A stretch of 63,575 nucleotides of DNA, the filler included, from Octopus bimaculoides (taxonomy: Eukaryota), in NCBI RefSeq assembly GCF_001194135.2. It is 5 parts of 5 records of this genome, joined end to end, with 100 filler letters (N's around TTAATTAATTAA, not from the genome) between each part and the next. Parts side by side here need not be neighbours in the genome. Positions count along the whole stretch, not along the records: positions 46,283 to 52,554 come from NC_069005.1; 4 more parts are not named here. The stretch is one strand, 5' to 3'. Positions 5,451-52,966 of this stretch are shown here, piece by piece. Position 1 is the first letter of the stretch, and the number at the start of each line of letters is the position of its first letter. The notes under the pieces are model-generated. The model had not been told where the DNA came from. It made no database searches and was given only the letters and a program-made list of their open reading frames with translations. A program made the translations under genes and the position numbers.

Positions 5451-6204
5451 ATGCAAGCATGCAGACACACACACATATGTATGTATGTATGCATGTATGT
5501 ATGTATGTATGTCATTATTCAGTTTATTTCAATATTTCTCGCTAATAGAGAAAGAGCCAGTTTCTAATGCATATCCAAGGCTCCTTCATTGAAATTTCAA
5601 CATCAATAACAGGGTATTTTTGTATGTATGAATGTATGCATATGTGCAGATTTGTATGTTTAGTTTTATGTATGTATTCTCATGCATATATAGTTGCATG
5701 TCTAGCGTATATACTTAAATGATAAACTTCTGGAAAGTTTTACACATTTCTAATGATCGCTTGGATCTGTAGTCTTTGAATCAGCTTTCTCCACTCTGGT
5801 TTTGAGAAGCTTAATTTCTCAAGATTGGTATTTAGGCTGTGTGTTACATATTCCAGTGAACTTGTAAATTGGATAGAGTAGCTGTAGATTCCTCAATAGT
5901 TCAGCATAGGTATTTCCTTTTTCACTGATCTTTAGCTTTATGTATGTATGTATGTTTGTATATATGTATGTATTTATGTATAGAATTAGTTGGTGAGAGT
6001 AAAATAAGTTTGAACTTAATTTTCAGCCTTTTCATTCAGGGCAAGGCCTATGGCATTGAAAGTAGCTATGAAAGCAATCCAAATTGAGCAGTTTTGGAGG
6101 TAGAAAGGTAGAAAAGCACAGTTTGACTTGAGACATATATTTACAAAGATCACAAAGTTCGGATTACAAAATGAGGGAAAAAGATATAGAAAAAAAAATT
6201 ATTA

Positions 6205-6595
6205 GGCACGGAAGTGGCTGTGTGGTAAGTAGCTTGCTTACCAACCACATGGTTCCGGGTTCAGTCCCACTGCATGGCACCTTGGGCTAGTGTCTTGTAC
6301 TATAGCCTCGGGCTGACCAAAGCCTTGTGAGTGGATTTGGTAGACGGAAACTGAAAGAAGCCCGTCGTATATATGTATATATATTTGTTTGTGTGTCTAT
6401 GTTTGTCTCCCCAACATCGCTTCACAACCGATGCTGGTGTGTTTATGTCCCTGTAACTTAGCGGTTCGGCAAAAGAGACCGATAGAATAAGTACTAGGCT
6501 TACAAAAAATAAGTTCTGGGGTCCATTTGCTCGACTAAAGGCGGTACTCCAGTATGGCCGCAGTCAAATGACTGAAACAAGTAAAAGATAAAAGA
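6205..6595 (+). mobile_element. tRNA-derived SINE family A, reference full-length copy
   Basis: Pol III A-box-like tggctgtgtgg and B-box-like ggttcagtccc, a CORE-like ccttgggcaagtgtctt box and a central microsatellite. Many copies in the window. Confidence 0.85.
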
Positions 6596-6917
6596 GAAAT
6601 ATATGGAAAAGAANNNNNNNNNNNNNNNNNNNNNNNNNNNNNNNNNNNNNNNNNNNNNNNNNNNNNNNNNNNNNNNNNNNNNNNNNNNNNNNNNNNNNNN
6701 NNNNNNNNNNNNNNNNNNNNNNNNNNNNNNNNNNNNNNNNNNNNNNNNNNNNNNNNNNNNNNNNNNNNNNNNNNNNNNNNNNNNNNNNNNNNNNNNNNNN
6801 NNNNNNNNNNNNNNNNNNNNNNNNNNNNNNNNNNNNNNNNNNNNNNNNNNNNNNNNNNNNNNNNNNNNNNNNNNNNNNNNNNNNNNNNNNNNNNNNNNNN
6901 NNNNNNNNNNNNNNNNN

Positions 6918-6969
<52 letters not shown>

Positions 6970-6984
6970 TTACATATATACACA

Positions 6985-7145
6985 ACAGATTGCCTTCAGT
7001 TTCTGTCTACCAAATCTTCTCACAAGGCTTTTGTCAGCTTTAGTTATAGTAGAAGACACTTGCACAAGGTACTATGCAGTGGAATTGAACCTGGAACCAT
7101 GTGATTGGGAAGCAAACTTCTTATCACATGGCTACACCTGTGCCT
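6985..7145 (-). mobile_element. SINE family A 5' half
   Basis: Reverse complement of the A head and body. Confidence 0.75.
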
Positions 7146-7229
7146 ATGTATGTTTATATATTTAAATATTTTGAAATGTGGAATGGAAAATAGAGTTGTT
7201 TCTACTATAGTCACAAAACCTGAAATTTT

Positions 7230-7392
7230 TGGGGAGATATGGGCTAGTCGATTACATCAACCCCAGTGTGTAACTGGTACTTATTTCATCAACCCCAAAT
7301 GGATGAAAGGCAAAGTCAACCTCAGTGGAATTCGAACTCAGAACCTTAGGATGGGCAAAATGTTCTGCTAACGATTCTGCCAGCTCGCCACC
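7230..7392 (-). mobile_element. SINE family B copy
   Basis: gtcgattacatcaaccccagtgtgtaactggtac...gattctgccagctcgcc. Confidence 0.75.
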
Positions 7393-8248
7393 AGAGAGTT
7401 AAGAAGTTGTAAATAATGGCATGTAAATATTGGGTAAGAAAACCGCTTTTGAAAGAAATTATCGAAGGCTGTCCCACAGCTGTCCAAGGGCATTATTTTG
7501 TAACCCAGTATTTAAATGCTATTATTTGTATATTCTATTAGTATTTAGGAGAAGCAACAGAGTGACTCAAGGACTAAGAGTTTCGTGCATTAACACTTAT
7601 CCAACTAGTTAAAAGTTTAGGGGTTGTGAACATATATACTGGTGATAATGGTGTTTTCCTGGATAGTTCAGGAGCAAATTATAAAACCGATTACAGTATC
7701 ATGTGGATTATTGTTATTTTTTAAATAGTTTGCCTGCTATACTGTCCAATAGATAAATAAATACACAAATAAACATATAAAGAAAATTTGTGCATACACA
7801 TACATAAACGAGTGTGTCTGTGAATATATTCCATATATACATATACATACACACATACATATACATATATATNNNNNNNNNNNNNNNNNNNNNNNNNNNN
7901 NNNNNNNNNNNNNNNNNNNNNNNNNNNNNNNNNNNNNNNNNNNNNNNNNNNNNNNNNNNNNNNNNNNNNNNNNNNNNNNNNNNNNNNNNNNNNNNNNNNN
8001 NNNNNNNNNNNNNNNNNNNNNNNNNNNNNNNNNNNNNNNNNNNNNNNNNNNNNNNNNNNNNNNNNNNNNNNNNNNNNNNNNNNNNNNNNNNNNNNNNNNN
8101 NNNNNNNNNNNNNNNNNNNNNNNNNNNNNNNNNNNNNNNNNNNNNNNNNNNNNNNNNNNNNNNNNNNNNNNNNNNNNNNNNNNNNNNNNNNNNNNNNNNN
8201 NNNNNNNNNNNNNNNNNNNNNNNNNNNNNNNNNNNNNNNNNNNNNNNN

Positions 8249-13596: not shown

Positions 13597-13967
13597 CCGT
13601 TGCTTACGACGTCGAGGGTTCCAGTTGATCCGATCAACGGAACAGCCTGCTCGTGAAATTAACGTGCAAGTGACTGAGCACTCCACAGACACGTGTACCC
13701 TTAACGTAGTTCTCGGGGATATTCAGCGTGACACAGTGTGACGAGGATGACCCTTTGAATTACAGGCACAACAGAAACAGGAAGTAAGAGTGAAAGAAAG
13801 TTGTGGTGAAAGAGTACAGCAGGGTTCGCCACCATCCCCTGCCGGAGCCTCGTGGAGCTTTAGGTGTTTTCGCTCAATAAACACTCACAATGCCCCGTCT
13901 GGGAATTGAAACCGCGATCCTACAACCGCGAGTCTGCTGCCCTAACCACTGGGCCATTCCGCCTCCA
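13597..13967 (-). mobile_element. tRNA-derived SINE family C, full length
   Basis: Minus-strand head tggcccagtggttagggcagcagactcgcgg...ggtttcaattccc (A/B boxes). The 3' body is shared with 36850-37165 and 41655-41972. Confidence 0.8.
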
Positions 13968-15611
13968 CTGGGTTATGCAGTGAATGGTGAATCAATGACC
14001 AGCCCAATTTGTCAATTAATTTGCCTGGTTTGTTGTTGAAGATGTGTGTGGTTGTGCATTGTCATGCTGCAAGTAGATTGTTTTTAATTTCTTCTTTAGT
14101 TATTTTTTCTCCTTATGTTTTTCTCTAAATATGTTGTATTTTTCAATCTATCGCATGCTGTTCACAGTACAGCCATGTTTCTTCAGCTCAAGGAAAATTA
14201 TGCACTTGTCATCTCTGTAATTGTCACTGTGTCTTTCTGTGCTGATTGTTGGCTCTTGAACTTCTTAGATCTTGGAGTAAACATGTCCAGAATGAAATAG
14301 GACCAAGTGATGAGGATGATGCATGTACAAATGGAAAGTTGAATGATGAAGCAGTGTTTATCACATGACAAAATTGTGGCTAGTATCAATAAGTCATCAG
14401 TAACTAACCTTGTTGATTGTGAAGGTTATGGGGATATATATTTGTTAAGGTCAGTACTGCAAAACATTTGATCGTCTCGCTGGATAATATTAGTTGTAGT
14501 AGCTTCTAGAATTGCAGCACTTTCAATCCTATAAGGGTCACGAGGGCAAAGACCTCACACATGTCAAATGCAACCATCAGCAAATGTTTCCACTGAATGT
14601 CTAAGCAAGTCTAGCTGAGGCCATGATATTATCCAATCACTTCAGTTGTGGTATACTCTTGTGTCACCATCCATATAGCCTTGCCCATCAAAATATGTCT
14701 TGTAACTCCTTTCTTACATATTCTAACCTCCTGTTCATAGTGCCAGTGCTGTGTCTTCTCAGTGTGAAGAAGTAGTGACTTGACCTGGCTTGACTTTTAT
14801 CTCCAAGTTATGCATCCTATTCCAGGAACCCTTCAGAGAAATCCCGCTTTTGCCACTTCTATTTGCATTCATACTCTTTTGGTCATTCTCCAAAATTCAC
14901 AACCACAGGTAAAGTTAGGCCTGAAAGCTGAATGGAAGAAAGTGATTTTTCCTTTTTTCCCCTTCTCCTTCCCTATTGTATAATGACTGAGTATGGTTTC
15001 TGAAGTATATATTACATCAGTGTCTACGATTCTTGTATTCATTTAAGCATCTTAGTTTCCATCACTCACGTCTCATTTAGTTTTGCACTTGCACAACCAA
15101 TTCCAAAATCATCAATAATCCTTTGAGATGAAGCTCTAATGATGTCGCATTATGTATTCAAAACAGTAGATCGTTCACTTCAACATATAATGCAGAAACA
15201 TGTACCATTTGTTGGTAAGTTTATTGTGATTTGTAGTTACTGCCATCAGATCCTCTCGGTCAAAAAGAAAGGCAACTTATGTATTCACAGTTGCTATTAC
15301 TGTAAACTTGTCATTATCCTCAGAATTAAGATGATGCTATTCATTTCAATGCCAACAATTTCCAGTATGACATGCCTTTGCATTATCTCTCAACGAATTA
15401 CTTGGGTAGAGTCTACAAAAGGCTGGTTTATATTTCAAATGCAAAACATTTATTCATACAGCAACTGTTTGTTGCACATCACCAGCAAGTATAAGGGCAC
15501 TGGCATCATTGTAATGCTTTATAGGATCAAAAACACTCTTAATGATAAAGTGTCTCTGATTAATCTGCTACTCCAGTTTACATATTCAATGACAAAAGTA
15601 CAATTTTAGTT

Positions 15612-15890
15612 GTAAGGCAGGTGGCTTAGTGGTTAGGGTAATATATTCACAATCATAAGGTATTGAGTTTGATTCCCAGTGGCATATTGTGTCCTTGAGC
15701 AAGACACTTTATTTCACATTGCTCCAGTCCACTCAGTTGGCAAAAATGAGCTGTACCTGTATTTCAAAGGGCCAGCTTTGTCACATTCTGTGTTATGCTG
15801 AATCTCCCCGAGAACTATGTTAAAGATACTTGTGTTTGTGCAGGCTGTTCTGAACCTTCGTCGTTGTAACTGGTGGGGTGCCAGTTATAG
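15612..15890 (+). mobile_element. SINE family C variant with CORE-like domain
   Basis: gtggcttagtggttaggg head; gtgtccttgagcaagacactttatttcacattgctccagtccactcag. Confidence 0.75.
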
Positions 15891-16142
15891 TTTACACTTG
15901 TTGAAGTAGTATAGTATGGCTCAATGCTTTTCTTACTGCCATTTCTTACTTGTTTCCAAGTAAGGTGCTGCTTATTCCTCTGGTCTTTCAAATGACAGAA
16001 TGCTCAAGTGGCTGGACACTGTTACGTAAATGCTAACATTGTTTCACACTAGGTTTCACAATGTCAAATGGGAAAACACACACACACACACACACACAGA
16101 GGTTTACTTACATACACATATGTTTGTGTGTGTGTGTGTGTA

Positions 16143-16305
16143 TACGATGGGCTTCTTTCAGTTTCCGTCTACCAAATCCACTCAAGGCTTTGGCCGGCCC
16201 GAGGCTATAGTAGAAGACACTTGCCCAAGGTGCCACGCAGTGGGACTGAACCCGGAACCATGTGGTTGGTAAGCAAGCTACTTACCACACAGCCACTCCT
16301 GCGCA
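16143..16305 (-). mobile_element. SINE family A 5' half, apparently young
   Basis: Very close to the family A pattern seen in the other copies. Confidence 0.85.
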
Positions 16306-16867
16306 TATTTAATTTATTTCCATTTATTACAAAGATCTTAAAATTTCTATACATTGGTGATCATGTATAGTACTATTTCATTCTTTTTTAGAAATCGACA
16401 TCATGATATAATCTGTAACCTAATAATTAAACATTTTATGAAGTGAGACATTTCATTAAAGATGGAAATGATTACAGTCTGGAGGAAATTAAGGGAATGT
16501 GTTTATTTTTGTTCTGTTATTTTGAGTCCAAAGTTGGATATAGCAATGCTAGCTTGCTTTGATACTGAGGATTAATAACTTTCAAATGATAGCATTGATT
16601 TAAGCTGCTAGTAACAAGATTGCAAGGATGAAATAACACTAGATTTCAAGTACTTACAGCTTGGAAATTTATTTCTCTAATAGTAACTGCTTCTCATAAA
16701 ATACCATGCAAATACAGTGCATAAGTTCCTGGTAAATGGAAAAATGTATCATGTGTTTGATAATATCAATAGAACAATTCCTTGAGCTTCTGCACTTCTA
16801 TCTAGCCACATTCTGAAACTGATAGGGTTCTTCCCCAACTCTTTCTCTCTCTCTGTCACTAATAATA

Positions 16868-16930
<63 letters not shown>

Positions 16931-16964
16931 GTGGTGGTGATGGTGGTGATGGTGGTGATGGTGG

Positions 16965-17002
<38 letters not shown>

Positions 17003-17030
17003 GTGATGGTGGTGGTGGTGATGGTGATGG

Positions 17031-17062
<32 letters not shown>

Positions 17063-17063
17063 G
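16868..17063. repeat. (GAT)n/(GGT)n compound microsatellite
   Basis: Direct inspection. Confidence 0.95.
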
Positions 17064-17480
17064 TTAATGTCAAGCCTTGAGTAGAAGTTTTGACAATTAG
17101 ATTTAAATTATCTTCAATGACTCTGGTTTAAACTGCTGTCAATCTCGTTATGAAATTACGTTACAGTGAGGGGGCCTTAACTGGAAATAGAACTATCAGA
17201 AAAATATGCATATGTAAATAGGCGTTCACCTATAAATACTCATAGTATTTATATGGTGTTCATGTGTTATAGGAGCTTTTATGGATTTCAGTAATATACG
17301 AGCAAGCTCACTCGCTATGCTGCACTGGGGAAACATTTATAAAAATTTATTCGTTTCTTGCAAGTTGTTGCATGAACACAACTAATGCTAACTAATCAAT
17401 GAATTTTATCAATCCTCTCAAATATATACGAAACTTTGTTTAACTTGTATCATTACTTATTTCAGAAATATGTAAACATC

Positions 17481-19368: not shown

Positions 19369-20467
19369 ATATATATNNNNNNNNNNNNNNNNNNNNNNNN
19401 NNNNNNNNNNNNNNNNNNNNNNNNNNNNNNNNNNNNNNNNNNNNNNNNNNNNNNNNNNNNNNNNNNNNNNNNNNNNNNNNNNNNNNNNNNNNNNNNNNNN
19501 NNNNNNNNNNNNNNNNNNNNNNNNNNNNNNNNNNNNNNNNNNNNNNNNNNNNNNNNNNNNNNNNNNNNNNNNNNNNNNNNNNNNNNNNNNNNNNNNNNNN
19601 NNNNNNNNNNNNNNNNNNNNNNNNNNNNNNNNNNNNNNNNNNNNNNNNNNNNNNNNNNNNNNNNNNNNNNNNNNNNNNNNNNNNNNNNNNNNNNNNNNNN
19701 NNNNNNNNNNNNNNNNNNNNNNNNNNNNNNNNNNNNNNNNNNNNNNNNNNNNNNNNNNNNNNNNNNNNNNNNNNNNNNNNNNNNNNNNNNNNNNNNNNNN
19801 NNNNNNNNNNNNNNNNNNNNNNNNNNNNNNNNNNNNNNNNNNNNNNNNNNNNNNNNNNNNNNNNNNNNNNNNNNNNNNNNNNNNNNNNNNNNNNNNNNNN
19901 NNNNNNNNNNNNNNNNNNNNNNNNNNNNNNNNNNNNNNNNNNNNNNNNNNNNNNNNNNNNNNNNNNNNNNNNNNNNNNNNNNNNNNNNNNNNNNNNNNNN
20001 NNNNNNNNNNNNNNNNNNNNNNNNNNNNNNNNNNNNNNNNNNNNNNNNNNNNNNNNNNNNNNNNNNNNNNNNNNNNNNNNNNNNNNNNNNNNNNNNNNNN
20101 NNNNNNNNNNNNNNNNNNNNNNNNNNNNNNNNNNNNNNNNNNNNNNNNNNNNNNNNNNNNNNNNNNNNNNNNNNNNNNNNNNNNNNNNNNNNNNNNNNNN
20201 NNNNNNNNNNNNNNNNNNNNNNNNNNNNNNNNNNNNNNNNNNNNNTTTTTTTTTCTAAAAAAACATTATGAAACCATTACTAAAATTTTCTGAAAAATCC
20301 TCATCAAAAAGTTTCTCAGAAAAATTTGTTCATTACTATTATTACTTTTATCTTGTGTCTATGCAATCTGGTGCAATTTACTATCTACTTTTTTTTTTTT
20401 AGAAATTCCACAGTTGTTAAACCTTGCAAAATATTCTGATTATGAACATGGTTTGTTGTTGTGCTTG

Positions 20468-20527
20468 TTATTGTTATTATTATTATGATTATTATTATTA
20501 TTATTATTATCATTATTGTTATTATTA

Positions 20528-20585
<58 letters not shown>

Positions 20586-20612
20586 CATCATCATCATCAT
20601 CACCACAACCAC
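20468..20612. repeat. (ATT)n/(ATC)n microsatellite
   Basis: Direct inspection. Confidence 0.95.
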
Positions 20613-20892
20613 CACTATTATCATTTATATGATTATTGGTATGAAAAAGAATAAACAACCTTAATTTTGTCAAGCAGTTTCTTTACCTTCTAAATTCTCG
20701 CATTTTTTTTTGTTTTTTTTTTTTTGTTTTTCGTTTTTTGGTTAATGTCTGTATCCAAATTAACATCTTAAGCATATCAATTTCTCTAATGTGGAACTTC
20801 GAAGTTTTTTGGGTTTTTTTTTTTTATGTATATAAAGTCTTTATCAGCTGATTACATTCAAGACTATACATTTATCTTCCTGGAAAAATACA

Positions 20893-45724: not shown

Positions 45725-48073
45725 AATATTCCCCCTTTCTTCTATCTTTCATTACAAGGGTTCATTGTAGAACGTTCCTGTTCCTCATCCTTAACAGCCC
45801 CCTCATCATTCCCCTGGTCCTACTGTCTACTCTTCTCCCTGCTTTCAACTCCTACCTCTCTGTTTTCAACTCCGACCATCCGCAGGGTCTCTCAGACTCT
45901 CACTAGTCCAAGATATTTCTACTCCAGTTAAGTAACCCTTCCTCCTAATCACTCTCACTTGACTCATTAGTTTATATTCTGTCATTGAACACATGTAATA
46001 ACTTCTAAAATACGAAATTTTGTCAGAAAGGTTGAAAGTGAGAAATAGCACCAGTATACGAAGTTTCAAACTGTATAGTTAAAATATAACAATTTAAAAA
46101 CTCAATAAGCGAAACTGAAGAGATCCAGCATGCATTCTTTCATTCTTTTGAATGGGAAGCAATTTTTTTTTAAGCAACAAGANNNNNNNNNNNNNNNNNN
46201 NNNNNNNNNNNNNNNNNNNNNNNNNNTTAATTAATTAANNNNNNNNNNNNNNNNNNNNNNNNNNNNNNNNNNNNNNNNNNNNATATATATATATACATAT
46301 ATATATATACATATATATATATACATATATATATATACATATATATATACATATATATATATACATATATATATACATATATACATATACATATATATAC
46401 ACATATACATATATATATACATATATATATATATACATATATATATATGTATTTGTTTATACATATATATATACACACACACATATATGTATATATACGC
46501 ATATATTTATATGTATGTATACATACATATATATTTATATATATATATATACACATATATTTGTTTATGTGTATATATATGTATATATAAACACGCATAC
46601 AGGATTCACCAAAAGCCAAAGAGATAGACGAAATGATGCACCAATTGTCCACAGAAGAGATGTATGTCCACTGTTGCTGAGTTTGAGAAAGTAAAGTAAA
46701 AAAAATTAAGCCACATATTGACAAGCATTAAACATTATGAGTTGGAATATGAATTTAGTTAAACTGTTCAGTTGAACTGAAAAGAAAATAACCTGCTGCA
46801 CTCATTTGAAGTTTTGTCACAGAAGACAAATAATAGTATGCAGGTTGTGTGTGGAGTGGTGGAGCATGAAGAGAGCGTGGTGTTAGTAAGTTATCAGTGT
46901 TGTTTTGTATGTAAATTACACCCGGAACCATGTCCTGTGATGTGTTTTTTTCTTTTAATTTGATACTGGAGAAACGAAAGCGAGTGCTAAGCTCAAAACT
47001 TATTTACTGTTTGATCACTAACAGATCTTTGTAGCTGTTGTTATATTCATCCTTGTTGTGAAGCCCCTAAGGAAGCTCCAATGAACACTATGATGTACAG
47101 GCATTGGATTTAATGACAAAGCTATGAGTCATACATCTGTTGTTTTTCAATCAATCACCATGCCCCCTCCCCCTCTCAACTCTGATATGAAGAGATTGAG
47201 TGTGAGTGACTGCACATGTTGCAGTCACTTCCCTTCCACTTGCCTCGTATATTTTTGAGCAGCTGTTGTTGTTGTTGTTGTTAGGTCTAGCTCTGCCTTC
47301 ATTGAGCAAACCTATGAGGACTAAAAACATTCCAGTTATGCCCATCACCTCTACTTTCCAACATGCAAAAAATCCAGTACCACATTATCTAACATGTCCT
47401 TTTCTCAGGTAGTAAGGTGTGATGTGAGGAAGATTTAGCTAAGAATAAGTTCCCAATGGTAGACAGGTGGACACTTGCTGTTCCTCTACTCTTCACATAG
47501 ACGGTGTGGATCCCAACATTGTATTTAAAGGCTGATGACATCACTGATGGTAGCAGCTATATTTTGTGCATGTGTTTTTGGTTTACAAGTTTGTCTATGG
47601 AAGCAACAAAGTTTTAGGATGGCATTGTAGATGTACCTGGCTTTTGGGGGTGGTATTTAGATGTATCTGGTTGTTTTAGGATGGTGTTGTAGATGTATCA
47701 AGTTATTTTGGGGGTGATTTCACACATCCATCCATTTGTGTCTCATTTTTGATATTGTATCTTTATATAAGTGATATTTGCATGCAACTTGTGATGGTGC
47801 AAAGTTCAGTTTTGTGTTCTTTGTAGCTAGTTTAGAAGCTGAGTCAAGGTTGCAATAATATCTGATGAATCTAATATATTCTTTGTAGACCAGTTTTGTT
47901 GTTGTTGTTGTTGTTGTTGCAGCTTTGTTTTGATTGAATGTAGCAGTGTAGAGCACTCTTAAGTATGACAGTAGATCATTTTGCTTTCTTCACCATGTCT
48001 TCTGTATGGGTGTGTGATGAATATCATAAAGGTGTTGCATGCAACCCCTGGCATCTTGCTTCAGTGTGTGTGG

Positions 48074-48075
<2 letters not shown>

Positions 48076-48127
<52 letters not shown>
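48076..48127. repeat. (GA)n microsatellite
   Basis: Direct inspection. Confidence 0.95.
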
Positions 48128-48130
<3 letters not shown>

Positions 48131-48826
48131 TGTGTGTGTGTGTGTGAATGTGATGGTTGGTGGTATTTGATACTCTGTCTGCAGGTGGAGGCAGGTGACT
48201 TCATAGGTGCTCCTTCAAGTATGTTGATTTAGAACCAAGTTTCAAGATGAATGATGCAGAGGTTGAAGTTGTACAGCTAAGCCTGGAGAACGTTGAGGAG
48301 AAGGTGTGAGTGTGTCATCGACTGCACAGGAGTCTGCCGTGTGGTGTGCTTCGTCAAGTCATTGAAAGGACGGGTCCTTGCTGTACTCCATTTAAGATAT
48401 TTTAAACTTTTGAAAGTATTGTTTTTCTGTACAACATACAAAGATCTGCTGTTGATGGGTGAATGAGAACACCCGACCCCCCACTGCTAAATCTGTCCCT
48501 GGACAATGGTTCTGTTTCAAGGACCAGAGAAACATGATGCAAATACACAATGGCATAGATCCATACTGTTTTGTTGTAGATCTTTAGGGGACAGCAAACT
48601 GTACATAGATATAAGGACAGATTTCAAAAGTGTTTTGCTATCCCCTCCAGTAGGAAAATACAGAAGCTTTGGCTCAAACTATGGCTTACAAACTTCAGGA
48701 ACAGCTGGATAACACAGCCAAGAGGATCTACACTGGTATGTAGAATTTGAAGTATATCTATCACACATACAGTAAGCATATCACCAGCAATTGAACCTTC
48801 ACTCAGCTGTATGTTTTTTTTCTTTC

Positions 48827-50038
48827 TTATATCTGGCCTGGTGGTGCTCCAACACTTTGGAGGACACTATTGGTTATTAAAGCATCACAACAGATATTGG
48901 TGGGATTGCTGGATCGGCACGGATTTGTGTGGATCTTAAAATGTCTTTTAAGGAGACTCTGTGTTGCGAACGCTCCATTACACACTTGGCATTTGAATGG
49001 TCGAATCCCAGTGTGAATTGTAATGTGCTCCTTTAGAGAGCTGCTCCGGGAGAATGATGACCCACATTCAGAGCAATGGAAAGCTTTGATGCCAGTATGT
49101 ACTTGGTTGTGCTTCTTCAGGTCACTTCGTTGTATAAATGCTGCAGGGCACAGAGGGCATTTGAATGGTTTGATTCCCAGATGAATTTTGCGATGGCGCT
49201 TTAGCAGGCTCTGTGTTGTGAAAGCTACGCCGCAGTCTTCACACTTGAGTGGTTTCTCGCCATTATGAATTGCATGGTGTTGCTTTAAGGAATGTCTGCG
49301 AGAAAAAGCAGCCGGACAGCTTGTACACTTGAACGGTCTTTCACCAGTGTGGACTCGACCGTGTTTAACAAGGTCACTGTTTTGTGCAAAAGCGGCATCG
49401 CACAAATCACAGGAATATGGTTTGACTCCAGCATGGAGAAGTCTGTGCCGATTGAGAAGGCTGTGTGTGGTGAAGCCAGAACCACAGAATTGGCAGACAT
49501 ATGGCTTTTCCCCAGTGTGGCACATGCGGTGCTGTTTGAGTGAGCTGCGGCGGGAGAAAGCTGCAGAGCAGAGGTCACACAAGAAGTCTTTTTCTCCAGT
49601 GTGTGTCTTGCGGTGTTTTGAGAGGTCACTACGCTGAATAAAGGCAGCAGGACACAGGTCACATTGGTGTGGCCTGATGCCCGAGTGAATCATAGCATGT
49701 CTTTGGAGTAGGCGTTGAGTGGAAAAGGCTGATGTACAAGACATCACAGGGCATGGGAAGGGTTTGTCACCAGAGTGGTTCATTTTGTGCTGCTTGAGTG
49801 AGGTGTTGCGTGAAAATGCAGCTGGACAAACGTCACATTTAAAGGGTTTCTCACCTGTGTGGACACGTCGGTGCTTCACAAGGTCACTGTTTTGGGAGAA
49901 GGAAAGAGGGCAGAGGTCACATTGAAATGGTTTTTTGTCAGAATGGATTGTAGCATGTCTTTTCATAAGATATTCAGTAGCAAATGTAGAGCCACATGTT
50001 TCACAGCGAAAGGATTTTATTGGTACCAACTCTGACAT
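48827..50038 (-). CDS. Tandem C2H2 zinc-finger protein, 403 aa, 13 fingers, no effector domain within this exon
   Basis: Uninterrupted ORF with 13 C-x2(4)-C-x12-H-x3-H units (aa ~10-370) joined by TGEKP-like linkers (TGEKP, SGDKP, TGERP, TGIRP). GC content is higher than in the flanks. Consistent with the known cephalopod C2H2 expansion. Confidence 0.95.
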   Translation of the reverse strand: MSELVPIKSFRCETCGSTFATEYLMKRHATIHSDKKPFQCDLCPLSFSQNSDLVKHRRVHTGEKPFKCDVCPAAFSRNTSLKQHKMNHSGDKPFPCPVMSCTSAFSTQRLLQRHAMIHSGIRPHQCDLCPAAFIQRSDLSKHRKTHTGEKDFLCDLCSAAFSRRSSLKQHRMCHTGEKPYVCQFCGSGFTTHSLLNRHRLLHAGVKPYSCDLCDAAFAQNSDLVKHGRVHTGERPFKCTSCPAAFSRRHSLKQHHAIHNGEKPLKCEDCGVAFTTQSLLKRHRKIHLGIKPFKCPLCPAAFIQRSDLKKHNQVHTGIKAFHCSECGSSFSRSSSLKEHITIHTGIRPFKCQVCNGAFATQSLLKRHFKIHTNPCRSSNPTNICCDALITNSVLQSVGAPPGQI

Positions 50039-51605
50039 TATGGTGTATTTGACAGACTAAGAGGTCAACTATATATTACATAATCACTTAAAATGATGTT
50101 TTACTTTGAATTTGGTTAAACCAATGTTGATACCAGAAAGTGTCACCTGAACCGAATGTGTCAAGTGAGCTTTAAATTTCATTTAAAAACGGGTTTGGTT
50201 TTGGGCATGTGCCTGTATGTAGATAAGTGAAAATGGTGGGGAAAGGTTTATCAAATGACTTTTTGAAATTATAGGATTTTTGGAAGTTGTTCTAAAAATA
50301 ATATGTGCTTCTCATTATTGTTGTTAATATTATTACTATAATGAAATATTTGCATGCTTGTATTTCATATCATTAGCATCACTAAAAGCAAGCTACCACA
50401 ATGTAAACAGACAAATGCTCTTGTCTCAAATATTAACAATATTCAAATGTATATTGTAAAATCTGGGTATTAATCCCAGTAACATAGAGAAAATCATTCA
50501 AGCTTCATACCATCTCACCCTCTCTCTCTCTTTCATTTACAAAGGAAGAACAACAATTTCAATACAGCTTCATCAAGTTAGAACCTTTGTTCTTCTTCAG
50601 CTTGCTTTCTCCTCTTTATGCTTTTGCTAACAATTAAGAATAGGGTTATGACTTTTAGGCTTTTCAAAAAGGTTCATTTCATTAAAGAGAACAAACACCA
50701 CAGACAAAACAATCATCCGATGATAAAGTTGAAATGATAGCATTGAAACATTAAAAACAAAAATTAAATAAATAAAAATAAAATTTAAATATTAGTTTCT
50801 TTCCTTTTACCCCTCTATTGTTTTTTTTTTCTTTTTGTTACTACCTTTGTCACAGATATAATGATATCATTAAAACATAGGTTCTAGTATTAAATAACTG
50901 TGACGATGGAAGAATCATGGTGCCTTTTGATGGTTTTATCACCTCCCAATTTTCATCAAGTGGTAGGAAGGAAGACTTTTCATTCTGAAGCATATATTCA
51001 GATTCAATGCATCAAGCTGTCCCTTAAATGTAGTTTCTTGCAGGTTGTCAGAACAGAAGTTAACTCCTTCATTGGAACAGATAGTAGTAGTAGTAGTAGA
51101 AGTGCTGGTGCAATAATGAAGATGATGACAATGATGATGATGGTGGTAGAAGTATTCTTGCAAGTAAAACCTGCCAACAGAAAGTGTTAGAGTTATTAAG
51201 GTTACGACACACTTCAAACTGAAAAAAAAAAACATAATTCATTACAAATATGAAAGGATATATGATATGAGGGAGCATTCTCAAACAGTGCACCACAAGA
51301 GACATCTAAGTGTCTTGCAGATTTAAAAAAAATATAATTTAACCCTTCTCATATAAACTGGCCGGAAATTATCCCTGATTCTATGCTGTAGCTTTCCTAT
51401 TTAAAAATGCTATAAATTACAAGCCTCCATCAAAATATTGTTTTAATTTATGTTTCAGACACCAACTTAATGATCACAAAGTTAATTCTTACAGGCTGTA
51501 AGTGTTACAAAGTTCACTTTGCAACCACATCTTCTACTATAACCCTGAGCCAACCAATACCTTGTGAGTGAATTGTGGAGACAAAAACTGAGGAAGCCTG
51601 TCATA

Positions 51606-51660
<55 letters not shown>

Positions 51661-52109
51661 ATATATACATATATATATATATACATACACACATATATAG
51701 TCAACAGATGAGAACCAGAGATTCTCAATACAAGAGACACTTAGTAATGCTCAAATGATTCAAACTTAGACTGATATTTACAGGGGATCAATTCTGAAGG
51801 GTAAAGAATGGTTATAAGAATCCACCTTTGCACTTCTTTGCATTATGATCTGAAATATAAGATCTTTTCTACCCTCACGAACGTACATCTACCAACATTA
51901 TAATGGATCTCTGAGACCCCAGAAACAGTTGTTGGACTTAAAACACCTTTCTTGCACCCCTTTAATTTTCTCATTCATTCATACTCTGTGTAATTTGAAC
52001 CTGCCAATATATATTTTTATCTATATTTTTATTCTTAAATATTCATCGTCTGAAAGTCTCCCATTTTGCTTTTTCTCATTTTCCATTTATACATATATAC
52101 ATATGACTC

Positions 52110-52465
52110 GTCCCATGCCGGTGACACATGAAAAGCACTATTCAAGTGTGGTCATTGCCTGTTCCACTTGATTGGCTCCCATGCTGGTGGCAAGTAAAAA
52201 GCACCATTTGGTCCGGTGCCGGTGGCATGTAAAAAACACACTTTGAGTGTGGTCATTGCCAGTGCCGCCCTACTGACTACTGTGCTAGTGGCACATAAAA
52301 GACACCTACTACACTCTCGGAGTGGTTGGCGTTAGGAAGAGCATCCAGCTGTAGAAACTTTGCCAGATCAGATTGGAGCCTAGCGCAGCCTTCTGGCTTG
52401 CCAGCCCTCAGTCAGACCGTCCAACCCATGCCAGCATGGAAAGTGGATGTTAAACGATGATGATA
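52110..52465 (+). mobile_element. Family D retroposon with internal tandem subrepeats and an RTE-like (GAT)n tail
   Basis: Repeated gccggtggcacgtaaaaagcac-like units; gtggttggcgttaggaagagcatccagc; ends ccatgccagcatggaaagtggatgttaaacgatgatgat. Confidence 0.7.
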
Positions 52466-52966
52466 TTTTGTATTTCATACCCAAGCTATTATATCTAATA
52501 TGTTTATCCACATAACCACCTCTCTCTCTCTCTCTTTATGTCCCTCTCTCTCTTNNNNNNNNNNNNNNNNNNNNNNNNNNNNNNNNNNNNNNNNNNNNTT
52601 AATTAATTAANNNNNNNNNNNNNNNNNNNNNNNNNNNNNNNNNNNNNNNNNNNNATATATATATATATAACCAGTTATGTATTATTCATAAAGAATCAAG
52701 TCACTTGAACGTATAACACACCACTAACTGGCTAGATAGAATCTTACAGAGCAGAGAGTGAAGTAATCTATTATCAGAACAGAAGGCATCAATGAATAGT
52801 AAAACACTGAGCGTGGTGTAAAACAACAATAAACAAACATACAAATGGATATTAAATATTGCAACAATTGTTTTGCTAAGAATTTTATTTTGATGCAAGC
52901 ACAATACAGTTCTTTGGATTATGTAATTCTCACACTCATGAGGCAATATTCTAAATACCGTGATAT

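Follow-up and report, generated by a model that had tools for sequence, protein, structure and literature searches.

We analyzed a 63,575-nucleotide stretch of DNA from Octopus bimaculoides (RefSeq assembly GCF_001194135.2), composed of five joined parts of the genome and referred to here as the window, and report on an unannotated zinc-finger gene in the part that spans window positions 46283..52554 (NC_069005.1). The sole long open reading frame (ORF) in this piece, at 48827..50038 on the minus strand, encodes 403 amino acids and a stop codon, giving a protein of 13 uninterrupted C2H2 zinc fingers followed by a 33-amino-acid C-terminal tail. The DNA-contacting residues of these fingers repeat with a strict period of three fingers, and we are confident that the array descends from an ancient three-finger unit whose recognition code has been under purifying selection. 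The wider statement, namely that this is a stand-alone poly-C2H2 protein, built from an ancient unit with a selected code, that would read double-stranded DNA of 9-bp period, is argued from sequence and, taken as a whole, is given slightly less than an even chance. The features of the gene are as follows, with the class of each finger defined by the residues at helix positions -1, 3 and 6.

48827..50038, minus strand: complete ORF, 13 C2H2 fingers and tail (ORF call and Pfam)
50057..50059, minus strand: in-frame TAG, 7 codons upstream of the ATG; frame open from 50056 to the ATG
49943..50011, minus strand: finger 1, class A (T-L-R), helix TEYLMKR, linker SDKKP
49859..49927, minus strand: finger 2, class B (Q-D-K), helix QNSDLVK, linker TGEKP
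49775..49843, minus strand: finger 3, class C (R-S-Q), helix RNTSLKQ, linker SGDKP
49685..49759, minus strand: finger 4, class A (T-L-R), knuckle CPVMSC (C-x4-C), helix TQRLLQR, linker SGIRP
49601..49669, minus strand: finger 5, class B (Q-D-K), helix QRSDLSK, linker TGEKD
49517..49585, minus strand: finger 6, class C (R-S-Q), helix RRSSLKQ, linker TGEKP
49433..49501, minus strand: finger 7, class A (T-L-R), helix THSLLNR, linker AGVKP
49349..49417, minus strand: finger 8, class B (Q-D-K), helix QNSDLVK, linker TGERP
49265..49333, minus strand: finger 9, class C (R-S-Q), helix RRHSLKQ, linker NGEKP
49181..49249, minus strand: finger 10, class A (T-L-R), helix TQSLLKR, linker LGIKP
49097..49165, minus strand: finger 11, class B (Q-D-K), helix QRSDLKK, linker TGIKA
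49013..49081, minus strand: finger 12, class C variant (R-S-E), helix RSSSLKE, linker TGIRP
48929..48997, minus strand: finger 13, class A (T-L-R), last finger, helix TQSLLKR
48830..48928, minus strand: non-finger C-terminal tail, 33 amino acids, TNPCRSSNPTNICCDALITNSVLQSVGAPPGQI, without domain match or homologue

The code is read directly from the helices. T-L-R is found in fingers (F) 1, 4, 7, 10 and 13, Q-D-K in F2, F5, F8 and F11, and R-S-Q in F3, F6 and F9, with R-S-E in F12. The strict 13-finger ABC order given in a preliminary description of this DNA was thus confirmed, and the parsed span, from the first Phe of F1 to the last His of F13 (50011..48929), equals the 48929-50011 reported there. 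In a regular-expression parse, all fingers but F4 (C-x4-C) follow C-x2-C-x12-H-x3-H; classical Krueppel-type ligand spacing is present in 13 of 13 fingers, core position 4 is Leu in 12 fingers and Met in one, and all 52 zinc ligands are intact. Pfam scores are correspondingly high, with 196.2 bits for PF00096 zf-C2H2 (cut-off 25.2) and 304.2 bits for PF13465 zf-H2C2_2 (cut-off 40).

The same description considered the knuckles and linkers to have diverged. This holds for the knuckles that it quoted (CETC, CPVMSC, CQFC, CEDC and CQVC), but these are the class-A ones, and classes B and C are less diverged: CDLC occurs four times (in F2, F5 and F8 of class B and F6 of class C), the rest being CPLC, CDVC, CTSC and CSEC. 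A CDLC-P-AAF hairpin is common to classes B and C, while class A presents C-x2-C-G-x-x-F. As for the linkers, the claim needs refining, as linkers, like knuckles, also bear class-periodic features. All 12 linkers have the canonical five-residue length, making a seven-residue H-to-C link, and six are canonical or near-canonical in sequence (TGEKP twice, TGERP, TGEKD, NGEKP and SGDKP). Those after class-B and class-C fingers are mostly TGEKP-like, whereas all four after class-A fingers (SDKKP, SGIRP, AGVKP and LGIKP) are non-canonical in sequence, although not in length. As every class-A linker is non-canonical, a module structure of A-BCA-BCA-BCA-BCA is suggested.

A chance origin of the periodic code is excluded. 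Contact residues match their class at 38 of 39 positions. The background consisted of 5,955 fingers from 283 retrieved zinc-finger proteins (ZNFs), in which the probability that two fingers of one protein share the same -1/3/6 triple is 0.0156; under this empirical background, the probability that at least 9 of 10 offset-3 pairs are identical is 5.5e-16. The periodicity is 0.9 here, as compared to a best value of 0.5 among 265 arrays of at least nine fingers from the retrieved homologues (offsets 1 to 6). Within classes, identity at positions -1, 3 and 6 is 1.00, 1.00 and 0.86, respectively, as compared to 0 between classes, and it falls to 0.14-0.45 at all other non-structural, non-linker positions.

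The duplication behind this pattern is old. No 252-bp period was found in the coding DNA by Tandem Repeats Finder (TRF), and same-class fingers share only 58% nucleotide identity, with a mean amino acid identity of 0.57 over 28 residues, that is, about 12 differences. When nonsynonymous (pN) and synonymous (pS) differences were pooled over all 22 same-class finger pairs, pS was found to be saturated, at 0.85 for same-class and 0.86 for different-class pairs, and third-position identity was 0.38 within classes and 0.36 between them. These values, together with the nucleotide identity and the missing TRF period, support the proposal that a three-finger unit was amplified long ago. Near-zero synonymous divergence, named beforehand as the result that would speak against this proposal, is far from the observed pS of 0.85.

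The proposal that selection kept the contact residues in phase was likewise borne out. Across same-class pairs, pN at the contact codons (-1, 3 and 6) is 0.04, with a pS of 0.85, which is close to the pN of 0.02 (pS 1.18) at zinc-ligand and core codons and far below the pN of 0.48 (pS 0.83) at the remaining variable codons. The contact residues are spelled by varied synonymous codons (Thr by ACT/ACA, Leu by CTT/CTA/CTG/CTC, Arg by AGA/CGG/CGC and Ser by TCA/TCC/TCT), and conserved residues spelled by differing synonymous codons reflect purifying selection on the amino acid, rather than recent ancestry or gene conversion. When contact and structural columns are set aside, the class signal that persists is weak but still significant (+0.081, permutation p=0.007). 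Moreover, the Ser codon families are frozen, with position 2 always using AGY and class-C position 3 always using TCN. This residual signal and the frozen Ser codons argue that the classes go back to one three-finger unit and did not converge.

What such a protein would bind can be approached from docking geometry. Each C2H2 finger contacts about 3 bp through helix positions -1, 3 and 6, with the array lying antiparallel to the primary strand. As all 12 linkers have the canonical length, neighbouring fingers should read adjacent triplets, and a strictly periodic code read in this manner is most economically explained by a target with a 9-bp period. The bases themselves can be predicted from the classical -1/3/6 code and from published GNN/ANN modules, which are of low reliability for single bases. 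The predicted triplets are as follows.

Class B: Q-D-K resembles the GCA module QSGDLRR; predicted triplet GCA
Class A: T at -1 gives T, L at +3 gives T and R at +6 gives G; predicted triplet GTT
Class C: R at -1 gives G, S at +3 is weak or gives T and Q at +6 gives A; predicted triplet A(T/n)G

Joined in antiparallel order, with F13 at the 5' end, these would give the low-reliability target 5'-(A[T/n]G GCA GTT)n-3', with which the motif of the preliminary description, NNG-(G/T)CA-GNN by a cruder code, agrees.

These considerations lead to the following proposed mechanism. An ancient 84-amino-acid three-finger unit was amplified and is now present four and one-third times. After duplication, scaffolds, knuckles and synonymous sites diverged to saturation while contact residues stayed constant class by class, under purifying selection as strong as that on the zinc ligands, with all 13 fingers constrained to read one ordered set of three triplets. 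If the target is a tandem array, docking would be possible in every 9-bp register and with a varying number of modules, and such variable docking may lead to length-dependent avidity without the need to engage all 39 bp simultaneously. The non-canonical A-to-B linkers would then serve as slightly flexible joints between B-C-A modules, leaving the spacing unchanged. Pfam matches in the ORF are to zinc-finger families only, with none to the effector domains KRAB, SCAN, BTB/POZ, ZAD, FiNZ or PR/SET. The earlier label of a KRAB-independent factor is trivially true of an invertebrate protein. An ORF without an effector domain might, speculatively, encode an occupancy or architectural factor, or one that recruits partners via an undetected upstream exon or the tail. 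The ATG lies 9 codons ahead of finger 1, and the AG of the upstream TAG (50058..50057), which follows a short, pyrimidine-rich gacctctt, could act as a splice acceptor; that an exon further upstream, carrying an effector domain, joins at 50058..50057 is possible but unsupported.

In its most specific form, this idea describes a natural 'polydactyl' reader, in which four in-phase three-finger modules would have been selected for register-independent binding of a cephalopod satellite or minisatellite with a 9-bp period. Such a protein would bind repeats or shape chromatin architecture in a sequence-specific manner and without an effector domain, perhaps as a mark of a centromeric, subtelomeric or transposable element (TE)-internal array, and would present the first natural zinc-finger code whose periodicity mirrors that of its DNA target. 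We put this forward tentatively, as a proposal that is less likely than not.

Several observations weigh against a periodic DNA target and should be considered when referring to the proposal. With the full-length protein as query, a word-indexed search gave only generic ZNFs of vertebrates and arthropods, of at most 46% identity and none with the code. A helix-only query, in which knuckles, H-x3-H and linkers were masked to X, gave 1,079 candidates, the best at 94 bits and none with the ABC code. Likewise, an exhaustive phmmer search of 1.84 billion representatives yielded mostly giant poly-ZNFs and no ABC code among the best 150 matches. The T-L-R triple is itself rare, occurring once among the 5,955 background fingers, and little is known of the bases that it prefers. 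In the 21-kb locus around the gene (L001, which includes 10-kb flanks and is the extent of octopus DNA scanned), two copies of the predicted unit GCAGTTANG in tandem, with at most 3 mismatches allowed, had 0 matches. The protein is not in a 15-billion-protein collection by exact look-up, nor was a transcript-derived contig encoding it found in this manner, and no AATAAA or ATTAAA lies within 800 nt downstream, such that expression is unproven. Finally, work on human ZNFs by genomic high-throughput systematic evolution of ligands by exponential enrichment (GHT-SELEX; PMC13541613) reports that finger sub-arrays are normally engaged alternatively and in part, and full contiguous reading of 39 bp is thus not required by the data.

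The weight of the missing orthologue is, however, limited. No cephalopod ZNF was named among the matches listed in any search, five matches without a name having been checked in addition, and the octopus protein itself is absent from the collections, such that failure to retrieve an orthologue says little. Of the remaining queries, a single three-finger unit gave 13 candidates only and was uninformative, and the tail TNPCRSSNPTNICCDALITNSVLQSVGAPPGQI, left unmasked in the helix-only query, recruited no homologue. The sole outlier among the best 150 phmmer matches, P0203 from the bivalve Solemya velum, shares 54% identity with the octopus ORF and is, by sequence, the nearest of the relatives retrieved.

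Two resemblances to simple repeats were noted and set aside. With G as the central base of the class-C triplet, the unit would become GTTAGGGCA and so include TTAGGG, and the distance from the gene to the scaffold end is about 14 kb. As Ser at +3 does not favour G and the telomeric period is 6 rather than 9, this likeness was treated as coincidence; telomeric (TTAGGG)2 had 0 matches in the 21-kb locus. The sole 9-bp-period TRF row in the piece, three copies of CAATGATGA (51111..51137), belongs to an (ATG)n-like microsatellite and agrees with the predicted unit at 6 of 9 positions in the best rotation, which is not significant over 18 rotation-and-strand comparisons. This row is part of an imperfect (TAG)n/(ATG)n run at window positions 51082..51142, about 1.1 kb upstream of the ATG, that also scores as CAATGATGA x3.

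Among the other explanations, the array might consist of four equivalent B-C-A modules, each recognizing the same isolated 9-10-bp motif, with copies dispersed or loosely clustered (for example, in a TE family or in promoters) and engaged alternatively. Alternative engagement being reported as the human C2H2 norm, and the duplicated sub-arrays 1-3, 5-7 and 9-11 of ZNF775 binding related sites (PMC13541613), this explanation has precedent, and it also accords with the lack of a tandem 9-mer in the 21-kb locus and with the non-canonical linkers that follow every class-A finger and mark possible module boundaries. The inter-module linkers, however, are all five residues long, with G at L2 in three of four and P at L5 in four of four. 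Such a length suits contiguous reading, and independent modules would have no reason to keep it. Nor would redundant modules be expected to show ligand-level constraint in all 13 fingers across saturated pS, and in human internal duplications specificities diverge, which is not the case here. We thus consider isolated-motif binding unlikely, although deserving of consideration.

The periodic code could also be a relic, shaped by past selection in a locus that is now unexpressed or non-functional in O. bimaculoides. The absences from protein and transcript collections, the unretrieved orthologue and the lack of a canonical poly(A) signal would all fit such silence, as would the position of the gene amid microsatellites and assembly gaps near the scaffold end. 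Indeed, exact look-up found the protein to be encoded in a single genomic contig, the chromosome-scale record CM046625.1 of O. bimaculoides GCA_001194135.2, at about 13.6-14.8 kb from its start. Against this, the frame is intact over 403 codons, with every zinc ligand and all but one contact residue in place, within an AT-rich, repeat-rich neighbourhood where stops arise quickly (G+C is 0.45-0.50 in the ORF and about 0.3 in the flanks). Absence from the databases may, moreover, reflect annotation gaps only, and no cephalopod ZNF was named among the matches listed. A silent relic therefore appears improbable.

Binding of a partner other than double-stranded DNA, be it a periodic RNA, a single-stranded nucleic acid or a protein, has a precedent in TFIIIA, where fingers 4-6 bind RNA, as do some multi-finger C2H2 proteins. 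The octopus ORF also gives weak Pfam matches to zf-C2H2_jaz, a double-stranded RNA-type finger, and half of its linkers are non-canonical. Yet, the jaz matches are overlapped by much stronger classical zf-C2H2 matches, the other half of the linkers are canonical or near-canonical, and class-specific constraint falls exactly at the major-groove contacts -1, 3 and 6 and on no other helix or sheet surface, making such a partner very improbable.

That the periodicity merely results from recent tandem duplication or from gene conversion that is still ongoing, specificity not being under selection, can be discounted: internal duplication of finger blocks is indeed frequent in ZNF genes (PMC13541613) and the class-B fingers share an invariant 8-nt string, AGTGACCT, but this origin is refuted by the saturated pS, by third-position identity that scarcely differs within and between classes, and by the absent 252-bp period, while about half of the non-contact residue sites differ and conversion tracts limited to three non-adjacent codons are implausible. 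The string itself (Ser-AGT, Asp-GAC, Leu-CTn) is invariant in the class-B helices of F2, F5, F8 and F11 (window 49097..49927), although nearby synonymous sites differ. TGACCT corresponds to the nuclear-receptor half-site AGGTCA read on the other strand. With two Asp codons available and Ser locked to AGY, invariance of the string has a chance of about 0.02-0.03 and is probably a coincidence.

As for the surroundings of the gene, a TE or retrocopy origin gained no support, as neither a terminal inverted repeat nor a long terminal repeat pair was found flanking the ORF and the flank ORFs have no Pfam match; the 10-kb flanks also contain no other ZNF ORF. Four N runs, which are assembly gaps, lie at approximately L001 2785..3247, 5541..7480, 13757..17300 and 19760..20700, amounting to roughly 7 kb in 20 kb of flanks, such that nearby genes, exons or repeat arrays could be hidden. 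Long (TA)n/(TATACA)-like microsatellites and a (GA)26 tract followed by (TG)9 are found at window positions 46283..46589, 51616..51699 and 48076..48146, the first adjoining an assembly gap. Matches to the Rfam families mir-297, mir-466 and mir-1277 in (TA/TG)n microsatellites all scored well below the gathering scores and were rejected as low-complexity artefacts, and Rfam and transfer RNA (tRNA) scans otherwise returned nothing beyond such sub-threshold microRNA-model matches.

Four further repeats were recorded. At window positions 52110..52306, two adjacent 96-nt direct copies, 72% identical and spaced by 101 nt, start with GTCC..TGCCGGTG.CA..T.AAAA.CAC and may be a fragment of a short interspersed nuclear element (SINE)-like or other dispersed repeat, with no tRNA or Rfam match. 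A 31-bp tandem repeat of about 2.8 copies (76% match) lies at window 47611..47699, about 1.1 kb past the ORF stop. On the upstream side, about 6 kb from the gene, a 93-bp tandem repeat at L001 3991..4234 has 2.6 copies (88% match), and an opposite-strand ORF without Pfam match runs through it. Lastly, a G+C-rich minisatellite at L001 20712..21049, with 20-bp and 60-bp periods and about 10-14 copies (70-76% match), lies beyond an assembly gap, some 3.8-4.1 kb into CM046625.1 and thus close to the end of this record. A subtelomeric array is one possible identity; no TTAGGG repeats occur in the 21 kb.

Octopus genomes hold roughly 1,500-1,800 uncharacterised ZNFs, cephalopod-specific C2H2 expansions have been described (Albertin 2015; Holzinger 2025, PMC12513265), and the binding sites of cephalopod ZNFs have been stated as an open question (PMC12513265). 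In the usual picture of poly-ZNF genes, these evolve fast, with scaffolds homogenised by duplication and contacts diversified in transposon arms races. The octopus ORF is the mirror image of this picture, with scaffolds that drifted to saturation and a periodic code held as tightly as the zinc ligands. If the target is periodic, a repeat in a protein would be tied to one in DNA in a simple and falsifiable way, and the gene would offer a first functional entry point to an octopus ZNF and a natural model of how short satellites can be recognized independently of register. Should the target instead be non-periodic, redundant sub-arrays are still seen to have been kept with identical specificity over very long times, in contrast to the divergence that follows human internal duplications (PMC13541613).

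In comparison with known systems, the octopus array is most readily related to internally duplicated human ZNFs. About 25% of human C2H2 proteins have near-identical finger pairs and 140 have duplicated arrays, in which duplicated blocks tend to diverge in predicted specificity (PMC13541613). The criterion used in that study, at most 5 edits per finger, catches recent events only. The octopus array shows the block homology of an internal array duplication (two or more adjacent fingers), but with about 12 differences per finger it lies outside the 5-edit limit, and its duplication, judged from the sequence, is far older than those captured by this limit. The closest likenesses are to ZNF775, which has three homologous three-finger blocks that bind sites with a shared core and were retained since before the marsupial/placental divergence, and to ZNF721, where the sequences recognized by the duplicated arrays occur in alpha-satellite repeats (PMC13541613). 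In both, however, extra fingers lie between the blocks, giving a period of 4 in ZNF775, and the predicted specificities have diverged, whereas the octopus protein, known from sequence alone, has a period of exactly 3, no spacer, scaffolds that differ by about 43% and nearly invariant specificity residues.

Other tandem C2H2 arrays made by internal duplication, such as those of the PRDM9 type, of young KRAB zinc-finger proteins (KZFPs) and of P0203, whose beta-hairpin scaffold, CDLC-x-AAFS, is also that of classes B and C, present near-identical scaffolds and diversified contacts. In P0203, scaffold identity is 0.69 and contact identity 0.19. The signature within the octopus protein is the opposite, with about 0.39 for the scaffold and 0.95 for the contacts, and it lacks the near-identical DNA units and variable contacts of rapidly evolving, minisatellite-encoded arrays. 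The contrast with P0203 underlines that it is specificity that is constrained in the octopus protein. ZFX and ZFY also have 13 C2H2 fingers and a periodic internal architecture conserved over long times, but their period is 2, is borne chiefly by features of the scaffolds and linkers, not by contact triples that are identical, and is accompanied by a large acidic activation domain. The best solved-structure match, at 272 bits, is ZFP568, an 11-finger KZFP in complex with DNA (PDB 5v3m and 5wjq). This complex illustrates that long uninterrupted arrays of canonical spacing can track the major groove for tens of base pairs, although ZFP568 differs in its KRAB domain, its non-periodic code and its unique target.

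Conceptually, the nearest counterparts are polydactyl zinc-finger proteins that were engineered against 9-bp sites within satellite repeats (Lindhout et al. 2007, PMC2018617). These use one three-finger module per 9 bp and rely on genomic tandem repeats to offer many sites, as is proposed here. They are, however, artificial, with a single three-finger unit and one 9-bp site per 180-bp or 234-bp monomer, whereas the octopus protein is natural, has four and one-third units and would face an array of 9-bp period. Scaffold divergence to saturation combined with a strict, spacer-free period-3 code was not found described in the literature searched. Internal duplication of finger arrays is already known and common in human ZNFs, and it is the long-term conservation of the periodic code that is the unusual part of the octopus gene.

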